Made by a program: the position numbers and the translations under genes. The notes under the pieces are model-generated. The model ran no database searches. It was given only the letters and a program-made list of their open reading frames with translations, and was not told where the DNA came from. Positions 4,701 through 34,938 of a DNA stretch of 64,000 bases are shown in pieces. The number at the start of each line of letters is the position of its first letter. Positions within the stretch are counted from its first letter, which is position 1. The stretch covers positions 248,001 to 312,000 of IMG/VR virus record IMGVR_UViG_3300028558_000016; one strand, written 5' to 3'.

Positions 4701-4704
4701 AACA

Positions 4705-7729: not shown

Positions 7730-8944
7730 ATGAGCTTTCAATATACACAAATAGATCCAGAAACAGCTACCCCGGAAGAAATTAAGGCCGAGATAGACAG
7801 GATGAAACAACTTTCCAATGAGTGGAAAAACGAAGAACAAGCAGTAAAAATCTTAATTAATTCCATGTATGGTGCTCTTGGAAATAAGTGGCTCGTATGT
7901 TTCAACCCAGACGTTGCTGAGACCGTAACACATCAAGGACAAAACTTCTTCATGCTTGCGGAAAAATCTATAAATCATTATTTCCAAAACATGTGGGTTA
8001 AGGATACAGAGCTTCATGCAAAGCTTGGAATTGTTGGAGAAGTAAAACCCGTAAAAAAACCTGTTGTAATTGCTGGAGACACTGATAGCTGTTATGTTTG
8101 TTGGGACGAAGTAGTGGAGTCTTTCGATTGGGAAGCATCCAATGTTGAAGGTGGACCTCATGGACTCATATTGAAAATAAATGAATTCCGATTTGCTAAC
8201 TTCTTAAACACCGTGTTTGACAGATATGCAGCAAGAGAGAAAACAAAGAACTATCAAGATTTTGAACTCGAGAATATTTCTGAATCTGCTATATGGCTTG
8301 CAAAGAAGAAGTACTTATTGAATGTTGTATGGCAAGATGGAATTGACATCAATACTCTTACTCAGATCACATTCAAGGGAGTTGAATTAGCACAATCATC
8401 AACTCCTGAATTTGCGAGAGAGAAATTAAAAGATCTCGTTAAGTTCGTATTCACAAATAAGAAAGGGTTGAAGCTTAACGACATCATCGGTCTATTAAAA
8501 AAATATAAAGAAGAATTCAAGATAGCTGATCCTCAGAAAGTTTCCATGGGTAGAGGAATAACTGATTATAGCAAATACATTTTGAATGACTCAACTAAAT
8601 TTGAGGTGGCAAGCAAATGTCCAATTCACGTTAGGGCTGCAGGATATTACAATTATTTGCTTAACCAAAATCCAAAATTAAAAAGCAAGTACGAAGTAAT
8701 AAAGGCTGGTGACAAGATTAAATTCTTCCACGCTAAGACAAAGGGATGGTCCGAGAATTTAGCGAGCAACGAAGAGGATGTATTCGCATTTCTTCCAGGA
8801 TCTTTTCCTGTGGAGTTTGCTCCTCCAATTGATTATGATAATCAATTCACTAAAACTATCATTGACCCAATAAATAGGATCACCTCAGCAATGGGACTTC
8901 CAGATATTGGCCCGAATTTATTTATTGCGCATGCGCTTTTCTAA
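7730..8944 (+). CDS. polB: Family B DNA polymerase, C-terminal subunit of a split enzyme (fingers, palm and thumb)
   Basis: KILINSMYG (motif B) near the N-terminus, AGDTDS (motif C), AKKKY, KGVE; no exonuclease domain or motif A. Confidence 0.9.
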   Translation: MSFQYTQIDPETATPEEIKAEIDRMKQLSNEWKNEEQAVKILINSMYGALGNKWLVCFNPDVAETVTHQGQNFFMLAEKSINHYFQNMWVKDTELHAKLGIVGEVKPVKKPVVIAGDTDSCYVCWDEVVESFDWEASNVEGGPHGLILKINEFRFANFLNTVFDRYAAREKTKNYQDFELENISESAIWLAKKKYLLNVVWQDGIDINTLTQITFKGVELAQSSTPEFAREKLKDLVKFVFTNKKGLKLNDIIGLLKKYKEEFKIADPQKVSMGRGITDYSKYILNDSTKFEVASKCPIHVRAAGYYNYLLNQNPKLKSKYEVIKAGDKIKFFHAKTKGWSENLASNEEDVFAFLPGSFPVEFAPPIDYDNQFTKTIIDPINRITSAMGLPDIGPNLFIAHALF

Positions 8945-16055: not shown

Positions 16056-16997
16056 ATGAACATATTAGACGAAGCAAACAAGATAGTAAACGAGAGAAGC
16101 GAAGAAAAAGAAAGAGCTTATGGTTCCTTCTCAGAAGGAATGAAGAGAGCTGCTTCCATCGCATCAGGCATGACTGGGAAGGACATAACAGCAGACGACA
16201 TGTTCGCATGCATGGTTGCTTTAAAGTTCTCAAGACAATCGTTCAATCACAAGACCGATAATCTATTGGATGCCGTTGCATACATTGGAGCATGGCAAAA
16301 CTTCATTGAAGAGAGGAAAGACGCCAATGATAAATTGGATAAACTAAAACAAGAACTAAATGAGGTAAAAGAATTCTTTAAGAATGATGGGCCAACACAA
16401 GATATTCCATCTGATCTCTGGAAAGAATACGTTGCTGAAGACGTTAAACATTTATCTCCTGTGCAAGAAATTAAAGATCTCGACGAGCAAAAAGAATTCA
16501 AGCAAAAGTTTGAAGAGGAAGTATTTGGAGAAAAAACTCTTCCAAGCTGGGCTTCAATGAGACCGGCAGATGCATTTAAAGAATTGGACGAGAAGCTTCA
16601 GGTCATGACTGATTCAATAATAGCTGTTCACAACAACATGATGGACATCAAGAAGGAAGTCAACATGAATACTGAATATGCCAAATACCTTGCAGAGAAC
16701 ATAGACAAAAGCATAACGTATCAAGAATATTTAGCAGAACAGCTTGATGCTACAATTGGAAAAATCGAAACGAACGGCATCAATGAACACATTAAAACAT
16801 CATTCTTGAACGGAGACAAATACTTTCCACACAGTGCCAAGGACATTGATTCTGGAGCAATCAACTGGGAAGGAAAACCAGTTAACCTAAAAGACCATCT
16901 CGATGTTCTAACCAAATACATTGAGTATGTAGCAGAACACGTCAAGCAATTGAAAGAGAACAAGCCGGTTGATGCTGGCGATGCCGGACCAAATTGA
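16056..16997 (+). CDS. DUF6378-like domain fused to a coiled coil with scaffold-like Y..Y.AE repeats
   Basis: ILDEA..IV..R...YG...ALK.SR...H..DN..D..AY; then EYAKYLAE, TYQEYLAE, KYIEYVAE. Confidence 0.6.
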   Translation: MNILDEANKIVNERSEEKERAYGSFSEGMKRAASIASGMTGKDITADDMFACMVALKFSRQSFNHKTDNLLDAVAYIGAWQNFIEERKDANDKLDKLKQELNEVKEFFKNDGPTQDIPSDLWKEYVAEDVKHLSPVQEIKDLDEQKEFKQKFEEEVFGEKTLPSWASMRPADAFKELDEKLQVMTDSIIAVHNNMMDIKKEVNMNTEYAKYLAENIDKSITYQEYLAEQLDATIGKIETNGINEHIKTSFLNGDKYFPHSAKDIDSGAINWEGKPVNLKDHLDVLTKYIEYVAEHVKQLKENKPVDAGDAGPN

Positions 16998-17068: not shown

Positions 17069-17428
17069 ATGGACCAAAAAGATGTAAAAAGAAGAGACGT
17101 ACTTCCATTTAACGAATTCGTTAAAGCGAGAGACACTGCAATGAAAGCGGTGATGTCTAAAGAAGGTGTAGATCCACATCCAGGTGCACACGGCATCAAA
17201 GGAGAAGACCTATACGTTAGAAACGATGCAAACGTTTACAAGGCTGCTGGAATTCCACACAACGAAGACCAAGCTGACATCAACAACAAAGTCAATGCAA
17301 ACCAAACTGACGTGCAAGCAAAACCTCATGATGGAGAAGATCCAACAGGAGAAGATGCTAAGTCAAAGAATGTAACCATTCCTGCGACAACAAAGTTTGA
17401 TACAGATCCGTTGTTCAAAAAGAAATAA
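17069..17428 (+). CDS. Putative virion/head protein
   Basis: First gene after the late-promoter motif; N-terminal VLPFNEF resembles the shared signal. Confidence 0.55.
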   Translation: MDQKDVKRRDVLPFNEFVKARDTAMKAVMSKEGVDPHPGAHGIKGEDLYVRNDANVYKAAGIPHNEDQADINNKVNANQTDVQAKPHDGEDPTGEDAKSKNVTIPATTKFDTDPLFKKK

Positions 17429-17434
17429 TCTGAA

Positions 17435-18001
17435 ATGAAATACGTAAAACTATTCGAGGGATTTCTCTCTGAAAAAGAATCCGACGAAGAAGTAGACAGC
17501 TTCGGCAACAAGAAGAAAAAGAAAAAGGATGAAGAGGATCCCGGCACTGTTCTTTCCAATACTACTGGAATTGTTACTGCAATGGAAGTAACTGAAGCTA
17601 AAAATGAGGACATCAGCAAATGGGACGACAAGAGAGTTAATAAAATCTATGGATATTACTTAGATGGATTGTCAAACGCAGAAAGAGAAACAGAAGAGAA
17701 AAAGAAATTAAGCGTTGACAAGAAACGTGAAGTGTTGAAGAAGCAACAAGTTAAATTCGAAAAACAGTTCGAGGGATTTCTCTCAGAAGCTGAGGTAAAT
17801 GAAAACAAAAACACGTATCCTTCACATTGGACAAAAGATGATGTAATCACAGTCAATGCCATAAAAATTTCTTTGGAAGATTATGAGAGTCAAGGAGGAA
17901 AGATAACAAAGACATTAATAAAAGATTCCATAAAGGAATTTAAAGTTGATGCAAAAATTAAAAACGAAGTTCAATCGGAATTAGAAGGGATATATTTATA
18001 A
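17435..18001 (+). CDS. Putative internal head protein with two copies of the targeting motif
   Basis: MKYVKLFEGFLSE and internal KQFEGFLSE (DNA repeat ttcgagggatttctctc). Confidence 0.6.
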   Translation: MKYVKLFEGFLSEKESDEEVDSFGNKKKKKKDEEDPGTVLSNTTGIVTAMEVTEAKNEDISKWDDKRVNKIYGYYLDGLSNAERETEEKKKLSVDKKREVLKKQQVKFEKQFEGFLSEAEVNENKNTYPSHWTKDDVITVNAIKISLEDYESQGGKITKTLIKDSIKEFKVDAKIKNEVQSELEGIYL

Positions 18002-18663
18002 TGACTACAACCTACTCATACGGACCGTTAAAGAGCGACTACTTTTCTCAGTATGAGAAGATGTGGATAGAGGGCTTTTGTAAGGAAAACAAGATTGAAC
18101 TCTCTGAGTCCAATGTTTGCACAACCCTTTCAACCATTTTAAAAGGAAAGAGTCCAGAAACGGTTAATGTAAAGATCAAGGCCTTGATTACCGAAGCTGA
18201 GAAGTTCTCAAGCTATTCAAAAGACATGTTCATCAAATCATGGAACAACATCCTTGGATTCACGATGAGCACTGTAAAGCCAAACGGAACAATATCAGAG
18301 AATCAAAGAGAATCGATGAAGCTTACAAATGCTTATTGGCTTATGGAAGCTCCAAAGATCATGTCGCAAGAAATGCAATACGCATACTTCAAGAGCTTAG
18401 TAATAGAATGCCTATCTGAAAATGGAAAAGCATTGAATGAATTAAAGGATTTCAATCCAGCTAAACCAAGCAGAATAGTTGAGAACGCAAAAACATATTT
18501 CTCTTATGAGAAGGTGAAGATGAAATTTCCACCATGCAGCATAAGAACAGAAGAGATAAGAAAGAATGAGGTAGCATTAAACATGATACCAGAAGCTGAG
18601 AAGATTATTGCTATGATCTCGTGGACAGCCGAGACAACAAAACTCATGTCAATGTTCAAATGA
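18001..18663 (+). CDS. Hypothetical protein
   Basis: TAATG-coupled ORF. Confidence 0.6.
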   Translation: MTTTYSYGPLKSDYFSQYEKMWIEGFCKENKIELSESNVCTTLSTILKGKSPETVNVKIKALITEAEKFSSYSKDMFIKSWNNILGFTMSTVKPNGTISENQRESMKLTNAYWLMEAPKIMSQEMQYAYFKSLVIECLSENGKALNELKDFNPAKPSRIVENAKTYFSYEKVKMKFPPCSIRTEEIRKNEVALNMIPEAEKIIAMISWTAETTKLMSMFK

Positions 18664-18974
18664 AACACGTAAAACTATTTGAAGATCATAAACTCGACGA
18701 AGTAACAAGCGCCGAGATATGGAAAGCAGTTGACCAGGCACAGCTCGACGAATACGAGAAGAGCGGACCTAAGGAGTTAACCATCGGAGACATGGAATAT
18801 AAGATAAACAAGTATTGGATGAACGAGAATGACGTCCCTTCGCTTGAGGTGGTCAACAAAGATACAAACAGCGTTCATTATGTTCAGCTGGCATTAGTAT
18901 GGAGCGGATATGTTAATTGGAGCGCATTGGGTCCAAAGGAAAGAGAAGAACTAAGACAAAAATATTTATCGTAA
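18660..18974 (+). CDS. Putative internal head protein
   Basis: Start moved to ATG 18660, giving MKHVKLFEDHKLDE. Confidence 0.6.
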   Translation: MKHVKLFEDHKLDEVTSAEIWKAVDQAQLDEYEKSGPKELTIGDMEYKINKYWMNENDVPSLEVVNKDTNSVHYVQLALVWSGYVNWSALGPKEREELRQKYLS

Positions 18975-18991
18975 CACTTTAAAACAGAAGT

Positions 18992-19150
18992 ATGTCATTC
19001 AATAAGATTTATCTAAGAGATTTAAAAGAAGTAAAGAAAGAATTTTCAGAAGACCCTCAAGGGTTCAAAAGAAGAATGACAAAGGCGGATGCCTTGATAG
19101 GACCGGTAAGCTCGGTAAGGTTCGTGGAAAAAGTAATGAAAACAAAATGA
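18992..19150 (+). CDS. Small hypothetical protein (52 aa, not in the ORF track)
   Basis: MSFNKIYLRDLKE...KVMKTK; ATGA overlap with the next gene. Confidence 0.55.
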   Translation: MSFNKIYLRDLKEVKKEFSEDPQGFKRRMTKADALIGPVSSVRFVEKVMKTK

Positions 19151-19614
19151 AAAGAATATTCTCATACGATTCGTTCTTGAACGAAAGCAGACTGACCGAT
19201 ATGTACGATGAGAGAAAAGAACTCATCCTACAAATTGCTGACATGAGAAAAGATATGGAAAATGATCCAGAAGTCATCGAACAACCGGATGCTTCTGCGC
19301 CAGGATCAAAGGCAGATTGGTATGGTGGAGAATTAGGAAAGCTTGATGCTGAGCTTGAAAAGCTTGAAGCAAAGATAGCAAAGGCCGAAGATAGAAAAAA
19401 CCCGAAAGAATTAACTTACGAAGAAGCAGTGCACATGGATACTATTAAGACAATGAACAAAAACATCGAGGACATCAAAAAGTCTCGAGCAAGCTGGCCT
19501 GACCGATCAATGGAACAGGAAGCTGAAATATATAAGAAGCGTTACGGAATAAACGGAGACATAGAAGGAATAATCTACGCTCTTAAGAAACTACAAGACG
19601 AAAAGAAAATATAA
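19147..19614 (+). CDS. Putative internal head protein
   Basis: MKRIFSYDSFLNE; coiled coil. Confidence 0.6.
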   Translation: MKRIFSYDSFLNESRLTDMYDERKELILQIADMRKDMENDPEVIEQPDASAPGSKADWYGGELGKLDAELEKLEAKIAKAEDRKNPKELTYEEAVHMDTIKTMNKNIEDIKKSRASWPDRSMEQEAEIYKKRYGINGDIEGIIYALKKLQDEKKI

Positions 19615-19621
19615 AACAATT

Positions 19622-20752
19622 ATGGCAAAGAGATTTCACAATTTTGAAGAGTTCATTCTTGAGTCGCAAAAGGCTGAAGAAGCAATCATGTCAGCTTTAA
19701 ACAAGAGGATATGGTCTGAAGTTTTCACAAGCTCTTACTTGACTGAAGCAGAAAAGGTTTGGTTTTCCAATTTCTTAACTGAGAACAACATCCCAGTGGA
19801 CATTGACAACATCAATGAATCTGTTTGGGACACCATCAAGGCAGGAATAGAAAAGGTGAAGGACTCTGGCACTGACATTGGAAAAAAGATCTCTGACAAG
19901 ATAGGAAAAGCTTATCAAGGAGCAAAACAATTCACGGCTTACATCGGAGACCTCATCAAGAAGTCTTGGGCTAAACTATTGGATTACTTCAAAAAGAAAT
20001 TCGCAGGTGTTAAGGACATCATCAAGAAAGATTACAAGAAGGCCGTTGATGGAAAAGAAATTTCAGAAGAAAAATTAGCTGCTGAATTAGAAGCTCTTGG
20101 AGAGACAGTAGATTTCTGGACGACAAAAGTTCCAGCCAAGATAGCTGACACAGTTAAAGGAAAATTCGCTAATGCAATCGTTCAAGAATGTTTAACTCAC
20201 AACGGAGAAATCCTTAATGAGCTTTGCGCATTCGATCCAATTAAAATGGATGAGATGGTGATGAAAGCTTTAAACGAAGCTGACGACAACGCAGATGCAA
20301 ACGATCCTGAGAACAAAGGAGAAGAAGGCGGAGACGCTGCACATGGAGATACCAAAGGATTATTCGGATGGTTGAACAAGATGGCGCACAAGATCTCTGA
20401 GTATCCTCCATTCAAATGGTTACATCAAATAAAAGGATTAGCTGAAAAAGGAGTAAAAGGAATTCTTAAAAAGATTTCTGAACTTACAACTAAATTGGAC
20501 GGTCCTGGAGTTTACGATTTCGCAGTGGTATCAATGATCTCTGCTGGAGCAATAGAATATTTCATTAAGCATTGGCTCGCAGAGAAGCTTGAAAAAGGAG
20601 TGTTTGGTTCTGAACCGATATTGAAGTTCATCCCAATGGGAACAACCATATTACACACTATTGAGTGGATAGCATTGATCGTGCTCATCATAGAAACAAT
20701 CAAGGAATTAACGACCGCTGGAAAAGAAGGGGACGCCGCCCCAGCACACTAA
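19622..20752 (+). CDS. Putative internal/ejected protein with C-terminal hydrophobic helices
   Basis: MAKRFHNFEEFILE; amphipathic helices; hydrophobic C-terminus. Confidence 0.6.
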   Translation: MAKRFHNFEEFILESQKAEEAIMSALNKRIWSEVFTSSYLTEAEKVWFSNFLTENNIPVDIDNINESVWDTIKAGIEKVKDSGTDIGKKISDKIGKAYQGAKQFTAYIGDLIKKSWAKLLDYFKKKFAGVKDIIKKDYKKAVDGKEISEEKLAAELEALGETVDFWTTKVPAKIADTVKGKFANAIVQECLTHNGEILNELCAFDPIKMDEMVMKALNEADDNADANDPENKGEEGGDAAHGDTKGLFGWLNKMAHKISEYPPFKWLHQIKGLAEKGVKGILKKISELTTKLDGPGVYDFAVVSMISAGAIEYFIKHWLAEKLEKGVFGSEPILKFIPMGTTILHTIEWIALIVLIIETIKELTTAGKEGDAAPAH

Positions 20753-20754
20753 GC

Positions 20755-21963
20755 ATGAAACGCATAAAGAGATTCGAGAGCTACATAAGTGAGTCTTATC
20801 TCGGAGGCTCTCGTGCTCCGCTGTATCACACTTCTCCAATCACAAACTCATATAGCATTTTACAGGAGGACAAACTAAAGTCCACTGTGATCCCTGACAA
20901 ATTTTGGTCGGCTGATTTTCCAGCTCCATCTCTAATATCATTCACAAGAAGCAAGGAATTCGTGTATGAGGATTACCCTGTCACGTTCATCGTTGACGGA
21001 GATAAATTGGAAGCAAGATTCAAAGTTCATCCAATAGATTATTTTGCAAAGACCGTTGGGCATCACATGAAGCCTAAAAGTCTAAGACAAGAAGGAGAGT
21101 TTGAATTTGAGGAAGCCGTACAGAACAAAGAAATAAACGATCTTCACAAGTACTTAATGGAGATTCGTCTAAACGATTCCTTCTTCATGTTCTATAAAAC
21201 ATATCCAAGAAACACAAGAGAAGAATATAGAGAATCATACGAAGACCTCGTTAAAGGTTTGATAGAATACAAGAAGAAGTTTAACACCAAGGTGGTTCGC
21301 AAGAACGGTAAGGAATGGACTCTTGATGACATGGAGAATGAAGCATCTGAATTCCCTATAACAGAAAACATATATCACAAAGACTCTGGAATGAGAATGT
21401 ACGTCAGCAAGGCTGCTGATGAAGACGATTACAAGGTTTATTATTCCTCATACAATCCAATGGGTGGATTCGACTCAGACACATTTTCTAAATACCTTAA
21501 CACAAACGGAATTGAGCACACAAAGATTGGTGGCAATGCCGTAAAGATGAACAAGGCCAACGTTGACAAATTAAAGAAGAGCATGCTAACTCTCGAGAGC
21601 TTAAAGGATGGAAAGGCGTTGACAAAGGCTGAGATAAATAAGATAGAATATTTTTACCATGCAACTGCCAAGAGCAATCTTGGAAACATAATGGCAAACG
21701 GAATTAGAGTTGGACCTGAGAAAGTTGTTTACCTCAGCGACACGTACGATAATGCAGCAAGATTTTTGGTGTTCAGAGGATTACCGATAATAGTATTCAA
21801 GGTAAAGGCTTCCAAGCTTAACATGGAGAAAATGGAAGAAAGCTTTGATCACAGTTATAGCTTCTTCAAGTGTCATGCATTCATGTATTATGGAAACATA
21901 CCAAAGAGTGCCATTGATTACGATTCAATAATGAAATACAACGATGAAGATAAAGAGGTTTAA
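20755..21963 (+). CDS. Putative internal head protein with two ADP-ribosyltransferase-like domains
   Basis: MKRIKRFESYISE; LYH...ISFTR...EFEE; C-terminal YHAT...IMANGI...VYLS...IP (Tpt1/KptA-like). Confidence 0.55.
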   Translation: MKRIKRFESYISESYLGGSRAPLYHTSPITNSYSILQEDKLKSTVIPDKFWSADFPAPSLISFTRSKEFVYEDYPVTFIVDGDKLEARFKVHPIDYFAKTVGHHMKPKSLRQEGEFEFEEAVQNKEINDLHKYLMEIRLNDSFFMFYKTYPRNTREEYRESYEDLVKGLIEYKKKFNTKVVRKNGKEWTLDDMENEASEFPITENIYHKDSGMRMYVSKAADEDDYKVYYSSYNPMGGFDSDTFSKYLNTNGIEHTKIGGNAVKMNKANVDKLKKSMLTLESLKDGKALTKAEINKIEYFYHATAKSNLGNIMANGIRVGPEKVVYLSDTYDNAARFLVFRGLPIIVFKVKASKLNMEKMEESFDHSYSFFKCHAFMYYGNIPKSAIDYDSIMKYNDEDKEV

Positions 21964-22393
21964 TAATTTCATAAACGAAGAAGCTTCAACGTTGATTCCT
22001 GTAGTGAGATGGGCATCAAAGAAATACACCGCAGAAGAGTTGAAGCCTCAGAAGTTTGATTGGGGAGGATTCGAATCATTCGGTCTTTGCTTCACTCCTT
22101 TTAATGGTATGGAAGATCCAAGGATAAACTTCTGGAAGAAATTATTACAGAAGCATCACAACAAGGAATTGGTTGCTAATTTTTATTACCTCGATCTTTC
22201 CGACTTCCCGTTGAAGTCAGAAGCAGCATTGGTTGATTTCGCAAAGCTTACATATAATTCATTGAAGGCTGAACGAATGATGAAGACTGATTATAAGATA
22301 CACATGACTCTGACGAATGACTTTGGAACGGCACAGCTCGTTGAGATAAGATTATTGGAAGGTTGCACCATAAAAATATTGGACTACAAGTGA
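21944..22393 (+). CDS. Putative internal head protein
   Basis: MKIKRFNNFINEE. Confidence 0.55.
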   Translation: MKIKRFNNFINEEASTLIPVVRWASKKYTAEELKPQKFDWGGFESFGLCFTPFNGMEDPRINFWKKLLQKHHNKELVANFYYLDLSDFPLKSEAALVDFAKLTYNSLKAERMMKTDYKIHMTLTNDFGTAQLVEIRLLEGCTIKILDYK

Positions 22394-23175
22394 AGAAGAT
22401 AAAAACATATAACAATTTTCTATTAGAAAAAAAGATGGAAGCCTTTGTTGAGATTGCTAAACGCAACAACATGACAGAGGACTGCATGCATCTCGTTGTT
22501 TGGTGGGGACTAACCGGATATTTATATTACCACGGATTGCATGATAAGAATCCACCGATCACTAAAGAAGGAAAGAGAATGCTTAAAGTAATTTTTGATT
22601 CAGTGGTGAACGGAACTTATTCCGATTACATGAACCAAAGAATAACAGCAGAAGACGAGGATAACGATCCAATAGTTATGGAAGAAAACGTCTATAAGCA
22701 GATGGGAAAGAATTACATTGATGACACGTTCAATGCCAACCTTGTTGAATTGAAACACCCAATTAAAGTTTTCAAGGATTATTCCAAAGACAGATTTGTG
22801 ACTGGAAAAGATACTGCATGGTATTCATTCTCTGTAATAAAGGGGAGAGACCAAAACGCTTACGGAGATGCTTATATCTGTTACGAGCTTCCAGCAGGAT
22901 TCAAGTATCTCGATACAAGAGGCCTTGCAGAAAAAGGAGAGATACTCATAGACGGCAAAGACTTAACAGATGACATGATAATAAGCAATTCAAGCGAGAT
23001 GAAGATAGACCTTAAGAAAGGCGATGAGATATTAACTGGCAAGTGGCAGAACAAACATGATGAGGTTAAAAAGGTTGGAAAGAATGAATTAGGCCAACCA
23101 ACTATAAATGGTAAACCAATGTTGAAGTTCAGAATAAAGAGATTGATGCCAAAGAAAAAGAAGTCTGAAGAATGA
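22390..23175 (+). CDS. Putative internal head protein, possibly Alt/VIP2-like ART fold
   Basis: GTG start gives MKKIKTYNNFLLE; WYSFS...YG...EKGEILI resembles S-x-S and E-x-x-I/L motifs. Confidence 0.45.
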   Translation: MKKIKTYNNFLLEKKMEAFVEIAKRNNMTEDCMHLVVWWGLTGYLYYHGLHDKNPPITKEGKRMLKVIFDSVVNGTYSDYMNQRITAEDEDNDPIVMEENVYKQMGKNYIDDTFNANLVELKHPIKVFKDYSKDRFVTGKDTAWYSFSVIKGRDQNAYGDAYICYELPAGFKYLDTRGLAEKGEILIDGKDLTDDMIISNSSEMKIDLKKGDEILTGKWQNKHDEVKKVGKNELGQPTINGKPMLKFRIKRLMPKKKKSEE

Positions 23176-24173
23176 GACGCATAAAGCTATATGAAGAATT
23201 TGTCGTTCAACTCAATGAGCTGAACGCAAGTCCTTATTTCTGGAGATGGGACACCAACAAGACTGCAAAGTTTGAATCGCCTGACGATACTTACGAAGTA
23301 TTCTTCTTTAAAACCAAAGACGACAACACATACATAGCACATTACGAATCAAAGAAATACGGAACAAACAAATCAGGACCTGGATCAACAGGAAATGCAA
23401 TGAGAGTTCTTGCAACTGTAATGGACATCATAATAGCTTTCCTTGATCAGTTTCCTGAATACGACGTTGAATTCGTAGGAGACAAAGAAGAAGACGAGAA
23501 AGATGGTCCAACCAAGAGAGACAGAATATACAAGATGATGATGCAAGATCTTCCAGACAATTACAAATGGGAACTCGCATCAGACAAGAAAACAATTCAC
23601 ATAAGCAGGCAACACGTTTACGAAGACGTTAGCGGAATTGGTGGTGAAACATTCTACCATGGATCAACTGACAAGAATTTAGCTGGTCACAAGGGATTGC
23701 ATGTAGGAACTCGTGAGGCAGCAAAGGAAGCTCTTGAAGCAAGGATAGGAGTTCCAGCTGAAGGAGAATGGGATGGAACAAGAGAATATGGAAAGACTCT
23801 ATTAGCAGGACAAGACAGATTGAACAAGATAGAGAAGGAAGAAAAAAGATATGTGGCAACAGGTTTCAATTGTGGAAGCGATGTGCCAAAAGAAGATTAC
23901 TATCCGACAGACAGAAAGGAAAAAGCAACATACAGCGATGAGTCTGTTGTTCCAATGAACTGCAAGCCAATAATATTTCCAGTTAAAATAGTCGGTCACA
24001 TGACAAACACGCCTCAGCATCCATTGAGCGATTCCAAAGCGAATGGATTGATGAAAAGAAGCTTGACGGCAGGAAATGCTAAGAGCGGATTCTATTACAA
24101 GAACATCGGAGAGGACGAAGGGTCTATATCAGCTGTCGTTCCGGATAAGTCTTTCTTGAAACTTACCACTTAG
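23172..24173 (+). CDS. Two-domain putative internal head protein; C-terminal ART-like domain
   Basis: MRRIKLYEEF; TGNAMRVLATVMDII domain; FYHGST...GLHVGT..AA. Confidence 0.55.
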   Translation: MRRIKLYEEFVVQLNELNASPYFWRWDTNKTAKFESPDDTYEVFFFKTKDDNTYIAHYESKKYGTNKSGPGSTGNAMRVLATVMDIIIAFLDQFPEYDVEFVGDKEEDEKDGPTKRDRIYKMMMQDLPDNYKWELASDKKTIHISRQHVYEDVSGIGGETFYHGSTDKNLAGHKGLHVGTREAAKEALEARIGVPAEGEWDGTREYGKTLLAGQDRLNKIEKEEKRYVATGFNCGSDVPKEDYYPTDRKEKATYSDESVVPMNCKPIIFPVKIVGHMTNTPQHPLSDSKANGLMKRSLTAGNAKSGFYYKNIGEDEGSISAVVPDKSFLKLTT

Positions 24174-24742: not shown

Positions 24743-24917
24743 AGATTTAAAATATAAAATGTTCTTGATTGACATCAAGAATCTGTGTGATCAACACGAC
24801 GACTTAGCGCCGATCTCTAATCTAATAAAAAATGGAATGACACGTTTGGAAAAAAAGCCTGGTCCGATCATAGAAAAAGAATTAAAGAAACCTATACCTC
24901 TTTATTTATTAAATTGA
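24735..24917 (+). CDS. Small hypothetical protein
   Basis: Overlapping co-oriented ORF. Confidence 0.45.
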   Translation: MSEDLKYKMFLIDIKNLCDQHDDLAPISNLIKNGMTRLEKKPGPIIEKELKKPIPLYLLN

Positions 24918-25278
24918 TGTGCATCTTCAGTATGTCACACAATTCCTCGCCGGCCTCTTTGAGATCGGAATCCTCGTAATACCAATTGATGGAAGCATTG
25001 TGAAACGCTTCCAATTTCCTGAATATCTTTATTAATTGCAACAGGCTTGATGGAGAGAAATATCCAAGGTCCACGTTGATCAGGAAATAAGAATTCTTGT
25101 CTTGAACTTTTAGGAAAGCATCAAGCCAATCTATTATTGGAAGATAAAATGATTTTGGATCTGTTGGAACTGAAACCCCTTTGATGTTAAAGATCCCATC
25201 CTTTGGAATGTACTCGAACGATGGAGACTTTTCTGTGGCCTTCATCCTTAAGGGGATATTGTACAAACCATCACTCAC
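24892..25278 (-). CDS. SiaC-family (DUF1987) regulatory protein
   Basis: ATEKSP...G.F.IKG.S.P.D...FY.PIIDWL...YFSPSS...LE...INWYY...EAGEE. Confidence 0.8.
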   Translation of the reverse strand: MSDGLYNIPLRMKATEKSPSFEYIPKDGIFNIKGVSVPTDPKSFYLPIIDWLDAFLKVQDKNSYFLINVDLGYFSPSSLLQLIKIFRKLEAFHNASINWYYEDSDLKEAGEELCDILKMHINLINKEV

Positions 25279-26090: not shown

Positions 26091-28211
26091 ATGAACGGTG
26101 CTCAATTAAAAATCAAACAAATCAAGGGTCTCAACGCAGAGCTCGCTGATAAGCTTTCAAAGAGTTTAGGCGGAACTGTTACCGGACCATTGACGATAGG
26201 TGGACCATTAGTGGTCACTGGGCCAACCATCATAAACACTGATCTTTCTTTACAAGGAGCTATAGTGGATTTTTATGGAAGTCCTGGACCTCCAGGATGG
26301 GTGCTAACCTCCACAGGAACAGCAACACAATGGGTGGATCCTTTAGGACCATTAGGTGTTTCAGGATTTAGTGGAACATCAGGTATCTCAGGTTACAGCG
26401 GAACATCAGGTGTTTCTGGTTACACAGGTGTAAGCGGTTATTCAGGTGTAAGCGGATTCTCTGGATATTCCGGAGACAGCGGTACAAGTGGAACAACAGG
26501 TATTTCAGGAACAAGCGGTGTTTCAGGTTTTTCTGGATACTCAGGCGTATCAGGATACTCTGGAACTTCTGGTATTTCAGGAACGAGCGGTATAAGTGGA
26601 ACAACAGGTGTAAGCGGATTTTCAGGATACACTGGAGCTTCAGGAACTTCTGGATTTACTGGTGTGTCAGGTTTTTCTGGATACTCAGGCGTGAGTGGTT
26701 TTTCTGGATACACAGGAACTTCTGGTATTTCAGGAACAAGCGGTATTAGTGGAACTTCTGGAATTTCTGGATACAGTGGTGTTTCAGGTTTTTCTGGTGT
26801 TAGTGGATGGTCAGGATCAAGCGGTATTTCTGGATTCAGTGGTTATTCAGGTGTAAGTGGATTCACAGGTGTGAGCGGTTACACTGGTGTTTCTGGATTC
26901 ACTGGAACTTCTGGTATTTCTGGATCATCTGGATATTTTGGACAAGATGGTATGTCAGGTTTTTCTGGATTCTCTGGATTCGGAATTTCTGGTTACTCAG
27001 GATATTCTGGAAACAATGGAGTTGCCGGTGGAGCTTTATACTATTTAAGAGATGAAGACTCAGATGTCCCAGGCTTTAAAGAATTAGATATAAATCCAGA
27101 TGGAATAGATCCTGAAGGATCTTATACAGCTGCTTGCGATAATACAACCGGCGAAGTATTAATAAAACAATTCTTAACTTTTCCATCAAACCCAGATCAG
27201 CTTTATATTTCAGGTGGTTCATGGATATTCGATACTTATGCCTCAGTAGACAACTCAGGCGGAGTTTCAAATATCGTAATAAGATTTTACAAGAGAGATC
27301 AATTTGGTATTGAGACTGAATTGTTCAACGTAACGACTGCAGAGATAAATGTCGTATCTCCTACATTATTTTCAAAAGAAATTCTCCAAGGAGAATTCAA
27401 TATAGCATTAACTGATAGATTATTAGTAAAGTATTTTGCAAAAACTACTTCAACGACAACAATTAACGTCAGCATTTATTTAGAAGGAAATACGCATGCA
27501 ACACATATTCACTCTCCTGTATCTTTCATAGGAGCTTCAGGTTTCTCTGGATGGTCAGGTTTTAGTGGAACTTCAGGAACTTCTGGATTCACAGGAGTTT
27601 CAGGATTTACGGGTGTGAGCGGATATAGCGGTGTTTCAGGTTTTTCTGGTGTAAGCGGATTCACAGGTGTCAGTGGTGTTTCAGGTTTCTCTGGATATTC
27701 TGGAACAAGTGGAACATCTGGTTATAGTGGAACATCTGGTTTTTCAGGCGTGTCAGGTTACTCTGGAACTTCTGGATTCTCTGGATATTCTGGAACATCA
27801 GGCTTCACAGGCGTCAGCGGTTTCTCAGGTATTTCTGGAGACTCAGGTGTTAGCGGATTCACAGGAGCAAGTGGAACATCCGGTTTTTCAGGCGTGTCAG
27901 GTTACTCTGGAACTTCTGGATTCTCTGGATATTCTGGAACAAGTGGAACATCCGGTTATAGTGGATTTAGCGGAGTTTCTGGATATTCTGGTGTAAGTGG
28001 ATTCTCAGGTGTTTCAGGATTTAGCGGATACTCAGGAACATCCGGATTCTCTGGTTACAGCGGAACAAGTGGATTTACCGGTGTCAGTGGATTCAGCGGC
28101 GTTAGCGGATTTTCAGGAACCTCTGGATTATCTGGAACTTCTGGATTTTCAGGAACCTCTGGATTTGATGCAGGTATTCTTGCATTGATCATCAATAGTC
28201 TTGGCTTGTAA
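26091..28211 (+). CDS. Collagen-like (Gly-X-Ser)n fibre protein with a central globular domain
   Basis: Two long [12 protein letters not shown] tracts flanking a roughly 170 aa beta-rich domain. Confidence 0.75.
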   Translation: MNGAQLKIKQIKGLNAELADKLSKSLGGTVTGPLTIGGPLVVTGPTIINTDLSLQGAIVDFYGSPGPPGWVLTSTGTATQWVDPLGPLGVSGFSGTSGISGYSGTSGVSGYTGVSGYSGVSGFSGYSGDSGTSGTTGISGTSGVSGFSGYSGVSGYSGTSGISGTSGISGTTGVSGFSGYTGASGTSGFTGVSGFSGYSGVSGFSGYTGTSGISGTSGISGTSGISGYSGVSGFSGVSGWSGSSGISGFSGYSGVSGFTGVSGYTGVSGFTGTSGISGSSGYFGQDGMSGFSGFSGFGISGYSGYSGNNGVAGGALYYLRDEDSDVPGFKELDINPDGIDPEGSYTAACDNTTGEVLIKQFLTFPSNPDQLYISGGSWIFDTYASVDNSGGVSNIVIRFYKRDQFGIETELFNVTTAEINVVSPTLFSKEILQGEFNIALTDRLLVKYFAKTTSTTTINVSIYLEGNTHATHIHSPVSFIGASGFSGWSGFSGTSGTSGFTGVSGFTGVSGYSGVSGFSGVSGFTGVSGVSGFSGYSGTSGTSGYSGTSGFSGVSGYSGTSGFSGYSGTSGFTGVSGFSGISGDSGVSGFTGASGTSGFSGVSGYSGTSGFSGYSGTSGTSGYSGFSGVSGYSGVSGFSGVSGFSGYSGTSGFSGYSGTSGFTGVSGFSGVSGFSGTSGLSGTSGFSGTSGFDAGILALIINSLGL
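26352..27010 (+). repeat. Coding 9-nt-period Gly-X-Ser repeat tract (limits approximate)
   Basis: Translation [14 protein letters not shown]... Confidence 0.85.
27531..28165 (+). repeat. Coding Gly-X-Ser repeat tract containing an exact 60-nt direct repeat
   Basis: 27738-27797 is identical to 27882-27941 (144 nt apart). Confidence 0.85.
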
Positions 28212-28233
28212 AGATCAAAATATATAAAAGAGA

Positions 28234-29001
28234 ATGATCAGGTTAGACACAGTAAATAAGTCGATTAGAATTTATTCGGATGCTACAGCAACTACGAATG
28301 AACCAAATTATGCAACATCATGGGATGACATAAGAGTGGTAAACCCGCAGTTCACGCCAGGCAGTCAAGATGGAGCTTTAAATGGAACAACGCCGATTGC
28401 AGTAATTTCTGCGCCGGCTTCTTCAATATACAGAAATATAAAATACATCCATGTTGCGAATGTAGACACAGTTCAACACGTAATAACAGTTGAGCTTTTA
28501 AATAATGGAACACAAAGAACTCTTTTAAAAGTAACGCTTGGAATAGGAGAAGAATTAATATTCAACGATGGTTCTGGCTGGATGACGTTAGACAATATTG
28601 GCGAACTGAAAATCACCGGTAATTCCGGAGCTAACATCAAGGTTGGTCAAATAGGTTTCGGCATCGATAACAATGGAAGTGTATTAACAACAGGAACAAA
28701 AGCTTATGCAGTAGTCCCTTTCTCAGGAACGATAGTCTCATGGGAATTGTTTTCAGATGTTGCAGGAAACGTTGTGATAGATGTTTGGAAAGCTCCCTAT
28801 GCGAGTTATCCGCCAACAGTGGCAAACACCATAACAGGAACAGATAAGCCAACGCTCTCTTCTCAACAGAAGAATGTTGACACGGTTCTTACTGGATGGG
28901 GAAACCAAGTAGTCAATGCAGGAGATATTTTTGCGTTCAATATAGATTCAGTATCAACGATAACGAGACTCAACGTGAGCCTCAAAATAATTAAAGACTA
29001 A
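28234..29001 (+). CDS. Virion/fibre-associated protein, paralog of 31300..32691
   Basis: Shared roughly 130 aa N-domain MIRLDT.NKS.RI.SDATATT.EP; C-domain DVWKAPYASYPPT. Confidence 0.7.
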   Translation: MIRLDTVNKSIRIYSDATATTNEPNYATSWDDIRVVNPQFTPGSQDGALNGTTPIAVISAPASSIYRNIKYIHVANVDTVQHVITVELLNNGTQRTLLKVTLGIGEELIFNDGSGWMTLDNIGELKITGNSGANIKVGQIGFGIDNNGSVLTTGTKAYAVVPFSGTIVSWELFSDVAGNVVIDVWKAPYASYPPTVANTITGTDKPTLSSQQKNVDTVLTGWGNQVVNAGDIFAFNIDSVSTITRLNVSLKIIKD

Positions 29002-29005
29002 AAGC

Positions 29006-31132
29006 ATGTCAAAGAAAGCAATAGATTTCGTATTCACAGGAGCAACCACACCAATCGCTTCTTACGATTCAACAAAGACCAACATTGGAACTTTGATCAA
29101 ACAATATACAGGAGCTCTCGCAACAGATAAGTTTGCAGGCCCAGAAATAGTTTCTGTCGCAAGACCAGGTGAAGCTTCCACTTCCATATTCGGAGGATTT
29201 CCATATATCGTACAATTTTCTACGACAATTGATTGGGTTTTCCTTGCAGAAAACTCTGCTGCCGCTGTGACAAGAAGAATAATCTGGTATGAATTTAATA
29301 AGACTACTCAAGTCTTTACGTGGAAAGGATTCATCACACTAACATACCCAGCTGCGACCGCACACACCATAAGAGGTTTAAGCGTAACAAAAGATAATTA
29401 CACCACTGGAACTGTAGCCGTCTCAGGAACTACTGTGACTGGAACAGGTTCTTTATGGTTAACTGAACCACAATCATTAGGTTCAAGAATAGGATTTGGA
29501 ACAACCGATCCAACCGCTGTAACAACGTGGTTTGAAATCTCTGCTATAGGATCAGACACATCCATAACATTAACATCAACTGCAGGAAGCATACCTGCTG
29601 GAACTGCTTATGTCATTGAAGATTTAAGAGTCTATACTGCGACAACAAATGCTACATTAACCAATGGCGGTTTATTTGTTACTAAAGGTTTAAGAATAGA
29701 AAACTTTTCAACGGGTGGAACAACAATTTCAGCTGCTGTAACAACCGATAACATAAGAGCTGTTTACTGGTTGGCTGATGCTTCAACTGTCACAAATACT
29801 GTAGCAGGTGGTTTATATGTCGACACGAGATCTTCATGGACTAACCAAGTTGCTTACATCGTCAACGTGACAGCTGCGACAACTCCAGCTATTTATGTCT
29901 ATAATACAAGAGCAGCCTTAACGCTTGCCGCAGGAAAAGACACAACAACAAACACCATAAAGACCGGAGTTCAAACCGTAACAGGTAACGTTTCTCAGGT
30001 AGGAAATGGAATTCTTGCAACGCTTTCTCATGGACCCGGTTCAGGAGTTAAGTGTCTTTATTTTGCAACAACCTCAAGAATAATCAGAGTAGACCTTGCA
30101 AATATTACCGCAGCTTCTACAACTTTCGTATCAGACTCGATGGTTGAGGTTCCACCAGGATCTTCGACAACATATCCTTTGACTGCAGTAATGTCTCATG
30201 TTTTATATTCTTCGATGATCGACAGACTTGTAATTCTTACGACCTCAGCAGCAGGACAAAGAGGTTATGTTACACAATACAACACGACCTCAGCACAATT
30301 CGATCACATATTTTTAATAGATGACAAGAACCAGGATCAATCAACTGCTGCGGTAGGATCAATTCCTTATCCATCTCTTTCAAACACGCAGATGGTAGGA
30401 GGGATGCTAAATGGAAGAATGTTTATTGTAAGAAACTCTGCTGCGGCAACTTTAAACCAGATGTACAATCTTCCAATAGGAGCACATTGGGCTTATACTT
30501 CTACATCAAATCAGGTCTTGATAACTCCAAGCATTCCAACAACGAATGCCTTGAAATTCTATAGACTTTATGTAAACGAGATAAAAAGATTAGGAACAGA
30601 TCCTTATGTAATTCAACCGGAACCTTACAAAATGTATGCAAGAACTTCTGGTATTTCTACAAATTTAGGAACATGGACTCTCATAAACGATGATGGAGAT
30701 CTTTCAGGATTAACACCTACTTCCGAAATACAAATCAAATTGGAATTCAACATTCTTGGAAGATATTGCATTCCTTCGAGAATAATGTCTTTGGCAGTCG
30801 TCTTTGAAGACACCACGACGGATTCACACTATGAACCTTCTATCGCGAACTCGAATGTTTCTACAAACGTATTCGCCTTCAGACAATCAACGGCTTTCGG
30901 ATCAAACATCCCTAACTTAAGGATTCAATTGTTCAACGCTGTAACAGGAGTTCCTATAATAGATGACAACGTAACGTCTTCAGCTTTTGGAACTTTCCAG
31001 TATTCTTCTAACAACGGATTATCGTGGAATGCATGGAGCAATACCCAGGATGTTGTAGGAAATTACATAAGATATACAGCAACTTCTCTGCCAGGATCTA
31101 CGAGAATTAGAGCTCTATTGACGCAAGCATAA
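29006..31132 (+). CDS. Large Thr-rich beta-structured virion/tail protein
   Basis: 708 aa, T/S/G/A-rich; YTTGTVAVSGTTVTGTG tail-protein-like motif. Confidence 0.65.
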   Translation: MSKKAIDFVFTGATTPIASYDSTKTNIGTLIKQYTGALATDKFAGPEIVSVARPGEASTSIFGGFPYIVQFSTTIDWVFLAENSAAAVTRRIIWYEFNKTTQVFTWKGFITLTYPAATAHTIRGLSVTKDNYTTGTVAVSGTTVTGTGSLWLTEPQSLGSRIGFGTTDPTAVTTWFEISAIGSDTSITLTSTAGSIPAGTAYVIEDLRVYTATTNATLTNGGLFVTKGLRIENFSTGGTTISAAVTTDNIRAVYWLADASTVTNTVAGGLYVDTRSSWTNQVAYIVNVTAATTPAIYVYNTRAALTLAAGKDTTTNTIKTGVQTVTGNVSQVGNGILATLSHGPGSGVKCLYFATTSRIIRVDLANITAASTTFVSDSMVEVPPGSSTTYPLTAVMSHVLYSSMIDRLVILTTSAAGQRGYVTQYNTTSAQFDHIFLIDDKNQDQSTAAVGSIPYPSLSNTQMVGGMLNGRMFIVRNSAAATLNQMYNLPIGAHWAYTSTSNQVLITPSIPTTNALKFYRLYVNEIKRLGTDPYVIQPEPYKMYARTSGISTNLGTWTLINDDGDLSGLTPTSEIQIKLEFNILGRYCIPSRIMSLAVVFEDTTTDSHYEPSIANSNVSTNVFAFRQSTAFGSNIPNLRIQLFNAVTGVPIIDDNVTSSAFGTFQYSSNNGLSWNAWSNTQDVVGNYIRYTATSLPGSTRIRALLTQA

Positions 31133-31150
31133 AAATAAAATATTAAAAAT

Positions 31151-31300
31151 ATGCCAGTAGATGATATAGTTTTCCAAAGCAATCCACCATTCATTTTAGA
31201 AGTTCCCGCACAGACACCAGGAACAATAAGAGCATTATCGCTTGATGGAGTATTCGATTTTACAAATGCTACTGAAATAATAACGATTCAAATCAGCTAA
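31151..31300 (+). CDS. Small protein (49 aa, not in the ORF track)
   Basis: MPVDDIVFQSNPPF...ITIQIS; TAATG-coupled to the next gene. Confidence 0.5.
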   Translation: MPVDDIVFQSNPPFILEVPAQTPGTIRALSLDGVFDFTNATEIITIQIS

Positions 31301-32691
31301 TGATTAGATTAGACACCATAAACAAATCACTAAGGATCTTCTCAGATGCCACAGCAACGACAACAGAACCAGTCTTTGTTACGGCATTCGATGACATCAA
31401 TTCCACGACTCCGGTGTTAACGCCTGGAAGCAGTGATGGTGCAACTGTTGGAAATACTCCACAAACTGCAGTAGCTTCTCCGGTAGCTTCCATCTACAGA
31501 AATGTAAAATATGTAAACGTATTCAACAGTGACACAGTTTCACACGTCATCACCGTTGAACTATTAAACAATGCTACCACCAGAACCTTAATAAAAGTAA
31601 CACTTAAAACGAGTGAGCAATTAATATACAATGATGGAGATGGCTGGGGAGTTATCACAGCTTTAGGAGAAAAGAAAGTAACCGGTGTTTCAGGATTCAG
31701 TGGATTCTCAGGAGTTTCTGGAATTGGAACCTCAGGATTTTCTGGATATTCTGGAGTAAGCGGCTTCTCAGGTGTTTCAGGTTTTTCTGGAATTTCTGGA
31801 TATTCCGGTGTTTCTGGATTCTCTGGAACCTCAGGATTTTCTGGATATTCTGGAGTAAGCGGTTATTCTGGTGTCAGCGGATTCTCTGGTTATTCTGGAG
31901 TTTCTGGATTTACTGGAGTCTCCGGACAAACAGGTGTTTCGGGTTTCTCTGGAATTTCTGGTCAATCTGGCGTTAGCGGATTCACAGGAGTTTCTGGATT
32001 TTCCGGCTACACAGGCGTTTCAGGTTTTACGGGTGTTAGCGGATTTTCAGGCATTTCTGGTGATTCAGGTGTTAGTGGTTTTACTGGATATTCTGGAATT
32101 TCTGGATACAGCGGAACTTCCGGTTTCTCTGGATATTCTGGAATAAGTGGAACTTCAGGCATCTCAGGTTTTACAGGAGTAAGCGGTTACACAGGTGTTT
32201 CAGGTTTCACGGGAGTCAGCGGATTCTCTGGATATTCTGGAGTGTCGGGCTATTCCGGAACTTCAGGATTCTCAGGTTATTCCGGTACTTCCGGCTTCAC
32301 AGGAACCTCAGGTTTTTCTGGAATTTCTGGAGATCCTTCTCTTGGATTAATCACAATGAGAGCATCAAGAGCTTCAGCAAATACCACAAACATTTATCTG
32401 AGAGATATGGATGGCAATCCAATGAACCAAGCTCCTTTGGTGATGCCATACAATGGAACGATAATAAATATTTCTGCATCATCTAACACTGCTGGTCCTG
32501 GCGCATGGTCTGCAGAAGTAAGAGATAATGGAACTTTAATAGCAGGAGCAGTGATAAATATGACAGCAGTTCAAACATCAAACTTTGGAACATATTCGGT
32601 GAACGTTAATGCTGGTGCACTTCTAATGATATTCATGACAGGAACTTCCATAGATAGACCTGCAATAACAGTATTAATAAAGAGAAGATAA
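31300..32691 (+). CDS. Collagen-like (Gly-X-Ser)n fibre protein
   Basis: Paralogous N-domain, repeat tract at about 31684-32331, C-terminal beta domain. Confidence 0.75.
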   Translation: MIRLDTINKSLRIFSDATATTTEPVFVTAFDDINSTTPVLTPGSSDGATVGNTPQTAVASPVASIYRNVKYVNVFNSDTVSHVITVELLNNATTRTLIKVTLKTSEQLIYNDGDGWGVITALGEKKVTGVSGFSGFSGVSGIGTSGFSGYSGVSGFSGVSGFSGISGYSGVSGFSGTSGFSGYSGVSGYSGVSGFSGYSGVSGFTGVSGQTGVSGFSGISGQSGVSGFTGVSGFSGYTGVSGFTGVSGFSGISGDSGVSGFTGYSGISGYSGTSGFSGYSGISGTSGISGFTGVSGYTGVSGFTGVSGFSGYSGVSGYSGTSGFSGYSGTSGFTGTSGFSGISGDPSLGLITMRASRASANTTNIYLRDMDGNPMNQAPLVMPYNGTIINISASSNTAGPGAWSAEVRDNGTLIAGAVINMTAVQTSNFGTYSVNVNAGALLMIFMTGTSIDRPAITVLIKRR

Positions 32692-32699
32692 ACATATAA

Positions 32700-34937: not shown

Positions 34938-34938
34938 A

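Follow-up and report, generated by a model that had tools for sequence, protein, structure and literature searches.

A tag of 12-16 residues recurs at the start of otherwise unrelated proteins in a 64,000-nucleotide stretch of viral DNA, positions 248,001-312,000 of the 482,156-bp contig IMGVR_UViG_3300028558_000016 (Ga0265326_10000002), which belongs to an uncultured T4-related phage. The whole stretch is hereafter called the window. Its span 17069-24173 is a compact, single-strand run of eleven genes, eight of which are tagged; a distant ninth tagged gene begins at 41086. We consider it likely that the tag is a T4-type capsid-targeting and maturation-cleavage leader, three residues longer than that of the T-even phages. 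Since the longer leader stands on at least 34 unrelated genes of this phage and on hundreds more in related contigs, it probably marks proteins that are packed in the head and injected. Counts of tags and searches for head genes in this genome cover the ca. 121 kb (25%) of the contig that were surveyed. An earlier reading of the window, made from the sequence alone (the sequence-only reading), had proposed a modular address that loads many cargos into the head for injection. Comparison with other phages supports this interpretation. We infer that the leader would dock its protein on the prohead, secure its packaging and be cleaved off after a glutamate, and that the protein would then be injected.

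The tag and its carriers

The extended consensus of the tag is M-K-h-[IV]-K-l-[FY]-E-x-[FY]-[IL]-n-E, followed by a small or polar residue. Its carriers in the window are listed in Table 1 and are named below by their first position. All nine tags begin at the initiator codon; seven are strong (17435, 19147, 19622, 20755, 21944, 22390 and 41086) and two are weaker (18660 and 23172). Positions 7 and 10 are phenylalanine or tyrosine in all nine, except for a histidine at position 10 in 18660, and seven of the nine leaders end in [L/I]-x-E. In the other two this end is degenerate or shifted: 18660 keeps an intact front half, MKHVKLFED, ahead of a degenerate rear half (HKLDE), and in 23172 the glutamate is displaced by three residues. 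The nine N-termini and the additional internal copy in 17435 reported by the sequence-only reading were all found, the start codon of 22390 being GTG, not ATG. One public gene call begins 22390 15 codons later and therefore misses its tag. The same reading described the bodies behind the tags as unrelated, which all-against-all BLASTP bore out; the exception is the untagged gene 18001, a paralogue of a tagged one (Table 1), which also matches 22390-23175 weakly.

The tag is a real feature of the window. Six-frame translation searched with the regular expression M.{3,7}[FY][DENS].[FY][ILV].E gave 7 matches versus 0.25 in shuffles (largest 3). With a position-specific scoring matrix (PSSM) built only from tags of other contigs, 10 matches of 8 bits or more were obtained versus 0.1-0.2 in shuffles, all on the plus strand and at the places listed, and a degenerate DNA pattern of the tag matched twice versus 0.00 in shuffles. 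When IMG/VR was scanned with one degenerate DNA pattern, at least 120 stretches with at least 159 sites were recovered; at least 157 of the sites open an open reading frame (ORF) of 60 aa or more, and there are often several per locus (ten in one). The tag consensus among the IMG/VR matches listed was MKHIKLFEQFINE, followed by A, S, K or G, and the four codons left free by the pattern were, among those matches, still strongly biased (His 43%, Leu 62%, Gln/Glu/Asp, Asn 63%). The same pattern gave 112 sites in 596 Gb of prokaryotic genomes, about the chance level. Half of these lay in ORFs shorter than 60 aa, and their mean score over the free columns was -5.1 versus +7.7 for the viral matches; about 12 seem genuine, about half of those on contigs of Bacteroidota metagenome bins. 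Taken together, the shuffles and the prokaryotic scan rule out a chance origin of the tag. The 2.5 Mb of viral loci that were fetched contain 401 PSSM sites, 355 of them immediately after a start codon (ATG or GTG), and the median tagged ORF there is 136 aa long.

Two prokaryotic look-alikes were noted. An identical 13-codon ORF, MKKMKRFNLFLIE plus a stop, is present in six Bacillus species (B. subtilis-group chromosomes; L233, L234, L240, L274, L279 and L287); it matched the DNA pattern by chance and may be a leader peptide or micro-ORF. An archaeal family of ca. 145 aa begins MK.IK.F.EFI.EGIVKK.SPD (metagenome-assembled genomes of DPANN and other archaea; L237, L255, L296, L297, L299, L307, L327, L330 and L332); it is only superficially tag-like and probably has an unrelated conserved N-terminal helix.

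With the surveyed parts of the contig beyond the window included, the number of N-terminal tags rose to 34 (32 counted by script and two in a register one residue shorter), i.e., 25 in addition to the nine originally listed. Directly after the terminase and sheath genes there is a second array, in which ca. 20 of ca. 35 small genes begin with MKHIKLFE(G/N/Q)FLNE or a close variant, with three further tagged genes located across the terminase from it. The contig stretches 238-248, 312-321 and 444-454 kb contain no tags. In a 138-aa protein encoded near the terminase the tag is internal, after a 56-residue extension; this protein has a match (E 2e-6) to a head-protease PHROG, in the C-terminal part of the latter.

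Table 1. Tag arrays and neighbouring genes (window coordinates unless the contig or a part of it is named; tags are given with the residue that follows).
Positions	Strand	Product (aa)	Tag, next residue	PSSM (bits)	Remarks
16056-16997	+		untagged		immediately upstream of the array; N-terminal Pfam DUF6378 domain
17069-17428	+		untagged		
17435-18001	+	188	MKYVKLFEGFLSE (17435-17473)	30.4	stop overlaps start of next gene
17750-17788	+		KQFEGFLSE, AEV	18.2	internal copy within 17435
18001-18663	+	220	untagged		paralogue of tagged 19622-20752 (BLASTP E 6e-14 over 180 aa)
18660-18974	+	104	MKHVKLFEDHKLDE	14.3	weak tag
18992-19150	+		untagged		
19147-19614	+	155	MKRIFSYDSFLNE, S	16.8	
19622-20752	+	376	MAKRFHNFEEFILE, S	14.7	C-terminal end hydrophobic
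20755-21963	+	402	MKRIKRFESYISE, S		C-terminal ca. 100 aa Tpt1/KptA-like
21944-22393	+	149	MKIKRFNNFINE, E	17.8	12-residue form of the tag
22390-23175	+	261	(M)KKIKTYNNFLLE, K	23.3	GTG start
23172-24173	+	333	MRRIKLYEEFVVQLNE, L	8.8	weak, longer tag
41086-41466	+	126	MRIKLFEEYLNE, G	25.5	isolated
L210 4666-16800; L215 2027-8055 (contig ca. 457-482 kb)					second and third tag arrays, flanking terminase/sheath

Likeness to T4 and the head genes of relatives

That a short N-terminal leader directs diverse internal proteins to the T4 prohead and is then removed by gp21 is an established principle of the T-even phages, and reviews already propose such a leader as a general protein-loading route of T4-like phages. 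The T4 facts given by the sequence-only reading proved correct: in the T4 record, IPII and IPIII begin with MKTYQEFIAE, then A. In the same record gp24 begins with MAKINELLRE, then S, and the maturation site of gp23 is FGSFLTE, then AEI; internal proteins of phage S16 begin with MKTYEDFINE, then A, or MKTYEEFINE, then S. The tag aligns with the T-even sequence over its own last seven residues, and amounts to that sequence lengthened by an x-[IV]-K insert behind Met-Lys. For packaging, the first 10 residues of IPIII are enough; in mutagenesis of this leader, targeting depended mainly on residues 4 and 7 and processing on residues 8 and 10, and an aspartate at position 10 blocked cleavage, not targeting (PMC9026906). 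Tyr4, Phe7, Ile8 and Glu10 of IPIII align with tag positions 7, 10, 11 and 13, which form the most conserved core of the tag. A seven-column sub-matrix, applied to 66 kb of T4 in six frames, ranked the gp23 cleavage site and the leaders of IPII and IPIII within its ten best hits. A tblastn search of 50,697 phage records with a 25-residue tag query matched nine records and no others, in every case at the start of an internal-protein gene beside a lysozyme gene in S16-like relatives of T4. The likeness is confined to the leader: no phmmer match to T4 IPI, IPII, IPIII, Alt, gp67 or gp68 was obtained among the bodies of all fetched ORFs, and the tagged bodies matched no internal-protein family in PHROG or Pfam.

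Tags were also found within head-assembly modules. At 13 loci found through the tag, the gene order is homologues of gp4, gp2 and the portal protein gp20, a tagged ORF of 112-125 aa, a gene for a gp21-like protease-scaffold of 600-790 aa and a gp23-like capsid gene. The protease-scaffold product, whose N-terminus matches the gp21 protease, is a fusion that measures 550-790 aa over the lineage; on a relative, precomputed Pfam assignments place it in Peptidase_S77 and the capsid protein in Gp23. Capsid proteins of this group are nearest to those of the metagenomic phage LR756500 (52%) and of the Lak phages (39%), the same relatives as were found with the UvsX protein of the window. Loci gathered through the capsid protein alone gave a similar arrangement: among the best 80 of 307 relatives, 36 bear tags, most of them on the gene that directly precedes the protease-scaffold, at a distance of 2.5-2.8 kb upstream from the capsid gene. 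No tagged cluster is larger than this head-module family, which has 29 members in 29 loci.

The motif is repeated in the scaffold itself. The fusions have, in their scaffold parts, 2-8 copies of [FY]xx[FY][ILV]xE (YSSYLAE, YAEYIAE, FFKFISE and others) versus ca. 0.1 in shuffles, and the capsid proteins of the tag-found loci all begin with MANL[IL]NE, then AEI, a tag-like ending that resembles the start of gp24. In the window, the untagged gene 16056 encodes a protein whose residues ca. 198-298 are homologous to the repeat region of the relatives' fusion (BLASTP E 5e-11 to 1e-5 in a seven-sequence set; phmmer E 4.6e-5), with three copies of the motif (YAKYLAE, YQEYLAE and YIEYVAE) versus 0.04 in shuffles.

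These comparisons suggest how the leader might act. It would form a flexible N-terminal extension of the cargo, and its aromatic residues at positions 7 and 10 would let the protein dock on the scaffolding core while the prohead assembles; there they probably mimic one unit of the [FY]xx[FY][ILV]xE repeats of the scaffold and co-assemble with the core. After closure of the shell, a prohead protease of the gp21 family (S77), the same that dismantles the scaffold, would cut behind Glu13 and free the mature protein in the head, to exit with the DNA at infection. A single address would in this way serve dozens of unrelated, mostly small and mostly uncharacterised proteins, including enzymes resembling ADP-ribosyltransferases (ARTs), for which T4 Alt would offer a parallel.

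The head modules of relatives are interrupted by mobile elements. A 128-kb relative, L216, has an IS200/IS605 pair (Y1 transposase plus OrfB/TnpB-like; L216 4963-6623) before the portal gene. In LR756500, two large paralogous ORFs flank the head genes (L129 13514-15127 and 21754-23553) and, judged from their translations alone, are homing-endonuclease-like.

The tagged proteins and their genome

The tag is carried by an extremely varied set of proteins. Clustering of the 299 distinct tagged bodies by BLAST gave 193 clusters, of which 157 are singletons, and the 23 bodies of this genome that were included are all in different clusters. At a threshold of 1e-5, only about two dozen of 150 cluster representatives match a PHROG, leaving ca. 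85% of the cargo families without one. Pfam domains are scattered among the cargos: Tad3 (E 4.5e-21), GNAT, CHAP, ATP-grasp, LRR, cREC_REC, cytidylyltransferase, PAP2, AAA and methyltransferase. Of these, Tad3 inhibits the Thoeris defence system. In the second array, one tagged gene bears LPD11, a domain of injected polyvalent proteins. Judged by their domains, these cargo types (ART-like, LPD11, Tad3, GNAT and CHAP) would fit injected effectors.

Two products of the window array have putative ART-type domains, an assignment that is likely but unproven and comes from weak sequence and fold matches. The C-terminal domain of 20755 matches phrog_38345 (E 3.7e-14) and phrog_5470 (RNA 2'-phosphotransferase; E 1.5e-4). 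By tblastn the 20755 product matches a phage PARP-domain protein (3e-8) and the RNA 2'-phosphotransferase of Dp-1/MS1 (4e-11), and its match to the Tpt1 structure in PDB entry 8tfz has an E value of 0.0023; no Pfam match exceeded the threshold. The 23172 product consists of a DUF6934-like N-terminal domain and a C-terminal domain (ca. 160-333) that is 60-76% identical to hundreds of metagenomic proteins of ca. 190 aa. Fusions to GNAT or ART-PolyVal domains are seen in some of its homologues (proteins P0003-P0119). The AlphaFold model of one member of this cargo family is of high confidence (pLDDT 89.7, pTM 0.84), but residues 1-10 have a pLDDT of 48, and the model places the leader outside the folded domain. 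Of the top 37 structural matches of the core model, nearly all have the ART fold, including every match at Z 5 or more (range Z 3-5.8), among them RES, NatT, AcrIF11, ParT, MbcT, PARP and diphtheria toxin. A Foldseek search of the cargo model against PDB and AlphaFold clusters gave nothing significant (E 0.04 or worse).

The homologues of the 23172 C-terminal domain carry leaders of different kinds on one core. In 104 of them a near-invariant core starting from FYHG is preceded by 13-30 variable residues. At least five leader flavours could be distinguished: MKHIKLFE..., the T-even-like MKKYKEFINE, MELRKFIATTIREYLNE, MDIRKAIRSVLQE and MKFQSFKNWLNE. Nearly all leaders on this conserved core of ca. 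170 aa end in [ILV]-x-E, and the flavours may mark different phage lineages.

The genome itself is T4-related. No close DNA relatives of the contig were found among the 50,697 phage records; a second assembly, 482,059 bp long, is circularly permuted with respect to the 482,156-bp contig. The UvsX-like recombinase of the window is less than 40% identical to every record of that collection, and its nearest relatives are those of the 462-kb LR756500 (39%) and the Lak megaphages (37%). Synteny with LR756500 is almost absent. T4-style genes in the window and its flanks include the RecA/UvsX homologue, a split family-B DNA polymerase and collagen-like tail fibres; a T4-type large terminase and a tail sheath are encoded elsewhere on the contig. 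The C-terminal, 404-aa part of the polymerase lies at 7730-8944 of the window, and its exonuclease/N-terminal part ca. 17 kb upstream, on the contig shortly before the window begins (L220 1-530), with many genes between.

Other genes were noted in passing. Adjacent genes at 3030-5856 have the Pfam domains of topoisomerase VI subunits B (HATPase_c, Topo-VIb_trans) and A (TP6A_N, Toprim), an archaeal-type Topo VI in a phage. Directly after the tag array, four large paralogous collagen-repeat tail-fibre genes (706, 463, 745 and 674 aa) occupy 26091-36963, with a fifth large gene (708 aa) among them that has one weak tail-fibre PHROG match and no collagen-repeat hits. A SiaC-family gene (PF09345) lies at 24892-25278 and a transposase-like gene (phrog_10081, E 1.5e-23) at 43084-44055, both on the minus strand, and 55353-56801 encodes a 482-aa PARP-domain protein. 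Past the end of the window (L221 11504-17247; contig 312-318 kb) there is an NAD-metabolism cluster with NAMPT/NAPRTase, two NUDIX proteins, NADAR and a cytidylyltransferase-like candidate for NMNAT, which looks like an NAD-restoring counter-defence set.

Alternatives and comparison with known systems

A number of observations weigh against a packaging leader. The tblastn match to S16-like phages rests on context, not on score, because its E values were 3-6. T-even internal proteins are basic, whereas the mature tagged cargos are mostly acidic (pI ~5), and 34 or more different packaged proteins would far exceed the number in T4. About one third of the tags of the second array keep MKHIKLFE.F but are without [IL]-x-E; by analogy with the Asp10 mutant of IPIII (PMC9026906), proteins bearing them are predicted to be targeted but uncut. 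Cleavage of the relatives' capsid protein after LINE is an assumption made from its sequence. Ahead of the arrays, the T4 late promoter, TATAAATA, has 3 matches versus 2.97 expected, none of them usefully placed; with no enrichment, late expression is unsupported. When the window and the fetched parts of the contig were searched with phmmer, using portal, protease and capsid proteins of T4 and of the lineage, the genome's own portal, protease, scaffold and capsid genes were not found; the sole hints of a head protease or scaffold are the scaffold-repeat homologue 16056 and the 138-aa protein near the terminase. In the capsid-protein search of IMG/VR, the best 80 of 307 relatives did not include the contig, and a contig of similar sample number, considered as the source of the missing module, proved to be another phage. 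The tagged ORF of the head module and the ART-like cargo had no tblastn match in the 50,697 phage records, where the lineage is without a cultured representative. Finally, the head modules of LR756500, L216 and Lak-A1 have no tagged gene, and for LR756500 and Lak-A1 the 42 kb examined around the capsid genes showed no tags; an IMG/VR contig (L016) whose capsid protein is 100% identical to that of LR756500 has tags elsewhere.

Some of the same facts could be accommodated if the tag did bind the prohead core and most tagged proteins were core components, degraded and expelled like gp67, gp68 and gp22, instead of cargo. The most conserved tagged family fills the slot of gp67/gp68 between portal and protease (phmmer detects no sequence similarity between them), many tagged proteins are small and acidic, as core proteins are, and extra internal copies of the motif in two proteins could be further cut sites. 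Yet most tagged proteins have a single, N-terminal site. Their bodies show extreme diversity and rapid turnover, in contrast to structural core proteins, and several contain enzymatic or counter-defence domains (ART-like, Tad3, GNAT, CHAP and ATP-grasp) that would be implausible as filler. We therefore regard a disposable core as an unlikely explanation of most tagged proteins.

Still less probable is a role of the leader that has nothing to do with the capsid, such as recognition by another protease or a chaperone, membrane or intracellular-compartment targeting, or a signal for degradation. The sheer number of tagged genes, the absence of the genome's own protease from the surveyed quarter of the contig and the unenriched late promoter would suit such a role. 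The leader is, moreover, a short amphipathic stretch (helical hydrophobic moment 1.63 versus 0.91 in shuffles, of which only 7.6% reach this value). Against it stand the residue-for-residue match to the T-even sequence at functionally mapped positions and the presence of the tag in head modules beside an S77 protease, with its repeats in the scaffolds. On composition, a secretion signal was rejected because the leader has no hydrophobic core, and a bacteriocin-type leader because it has no double glycine.

The tag is a protein signal and not a DNA or RNA element. Over the 24 tags of this genome that were compared, pairwise identity is 0.68 at codon positions 1 and 2 and falls to 0.46 for the third position; in the flanking DNA, taken as 30 nt upstream plus 36 nt downstream, it is 0.30-0.34, the upstream value of 0.34 being at background. 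Synonymous codons are mixed about evenly (GAG 12/GAA 10, TTC 11/TTT 10, Leu CTA 9/TTA 7/TTG 2). Tagged genes are without obvious Shine-Dalgarno sequences and tightly packed or overlapping, their arrays resemble cassette arrays, and T-even internal-protein loci are recombination hot spots; still, conservation of a Shine-Dalgarno-free initiation element or a cassette recombination site, with the peptide as a by-product, is scarcely credible given these codon and flank values and substitutions that are conservative in the protein (F/Y, I/V/L).

A T4-type packaging leader stays the preferred explanation. A broader proposal, which we advance tentatively and hold at somewhat below even chances, is that the leader works as an address label, readable in the bare sequence, for all the proteins injected by a large uncultured T4-like branch that includes huge phages. 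Each genome would then encode dozens of head-packaged effectors, drawn from at least 190 unrelated, mostly uncharacterised families and enriched in host-takeover and anti-defence functions, and the flavour of the leader in each lineage would be matched to its own scaffold and protease. In a literature search of limited extent, which is weak evidence of novelty, the tag strings occurred in no paper, and reviews of T4 heads and jumbo phages described no such extended leader. Within that search we likewise found no description of the 13-residue form, of a deep uncultured T4-like branch with 0.48-Mb genomes that uses it, of such numbers (34 or more genes within one quarter of a genome, and at least ca. 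190 unrelated cargo families), of the link to scaffold repeats or of lineage-specific leader flavours on one cargo.

Proteins carried in the head act before any phage gene is expressed, and T4 IPI* and Alt are counter-defence or host-takeover factors of this kind. If the proposed role is correct, a portable, recognisable address would let metagenomic surveys list early effectors of uncultured phages, and leader flavours on one cargo could mark which scaffold-protease system a phage uses. The capsid-targeting principle of T4 would extend from the T-even phages to a deep, abundant environmental lineage with genomes near 0.5 Mb, which would suggest that the mechanism is ancient in the T4 superfamily. 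The tag would also provide a second natural leader for packaging proteins in phage capsids.

Among known systems, the T-even leader is the closest. Both begin with M-K, have two aromatic residues three positions apart and [IL]-x-E followed by a small residue, are attached to unrelated bodies, and are encoded by genes in small arrays. The tag differs in being three residues longer, with the conserved insert x-[IV]-K (K5; usually H3 and L6), and in its numbers: 34 tagged genes or more in the surveyed quarter of the contig, as opposed to a handful in the T-even phages, from which the uncultured tagged lineage is distant. The motif is repeated along the lineage's scaffold as gp21 sites are along T4 gp22, but protease and scaffold, separate in the T4 core, are here fused into one protein. 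If the ART assignment is right, the cargos would resemble T4 Alt and the polyvalent proteins in that enzymes of the ADP-ribosyltransferase superfamily would be carried in the head. LPD and ART-PolyVal-type domains are also present among the cargos or their relatives, although as separate small proteins, each with its own tag, and not as one giant multidomain protein.

In phiKZ-like giant phages (SPN3US and 201phi2-1), a gp21-family protease likewise processes many head-internal proteins, with many paralogous cargos, and the propeptides are thought to target proteins to the prohead; these propeptides are mostly of 80-160 residues, have A/S/G-x-E sites and share little sequence (PMC5694885). The tag, in contrast, is short, strongly conserved, portable and ends in [ILV]-x-E, and its length and ending rule out an ejection propeptide of the phiKZ type. 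Encapsulin cargo-loading peptides provide a functional analogy only: they too are short, portable peptides that send unrelated cargo into a shell of the HK97 fold, but they are C-terminal, bind the shell directly and are not cleaved.

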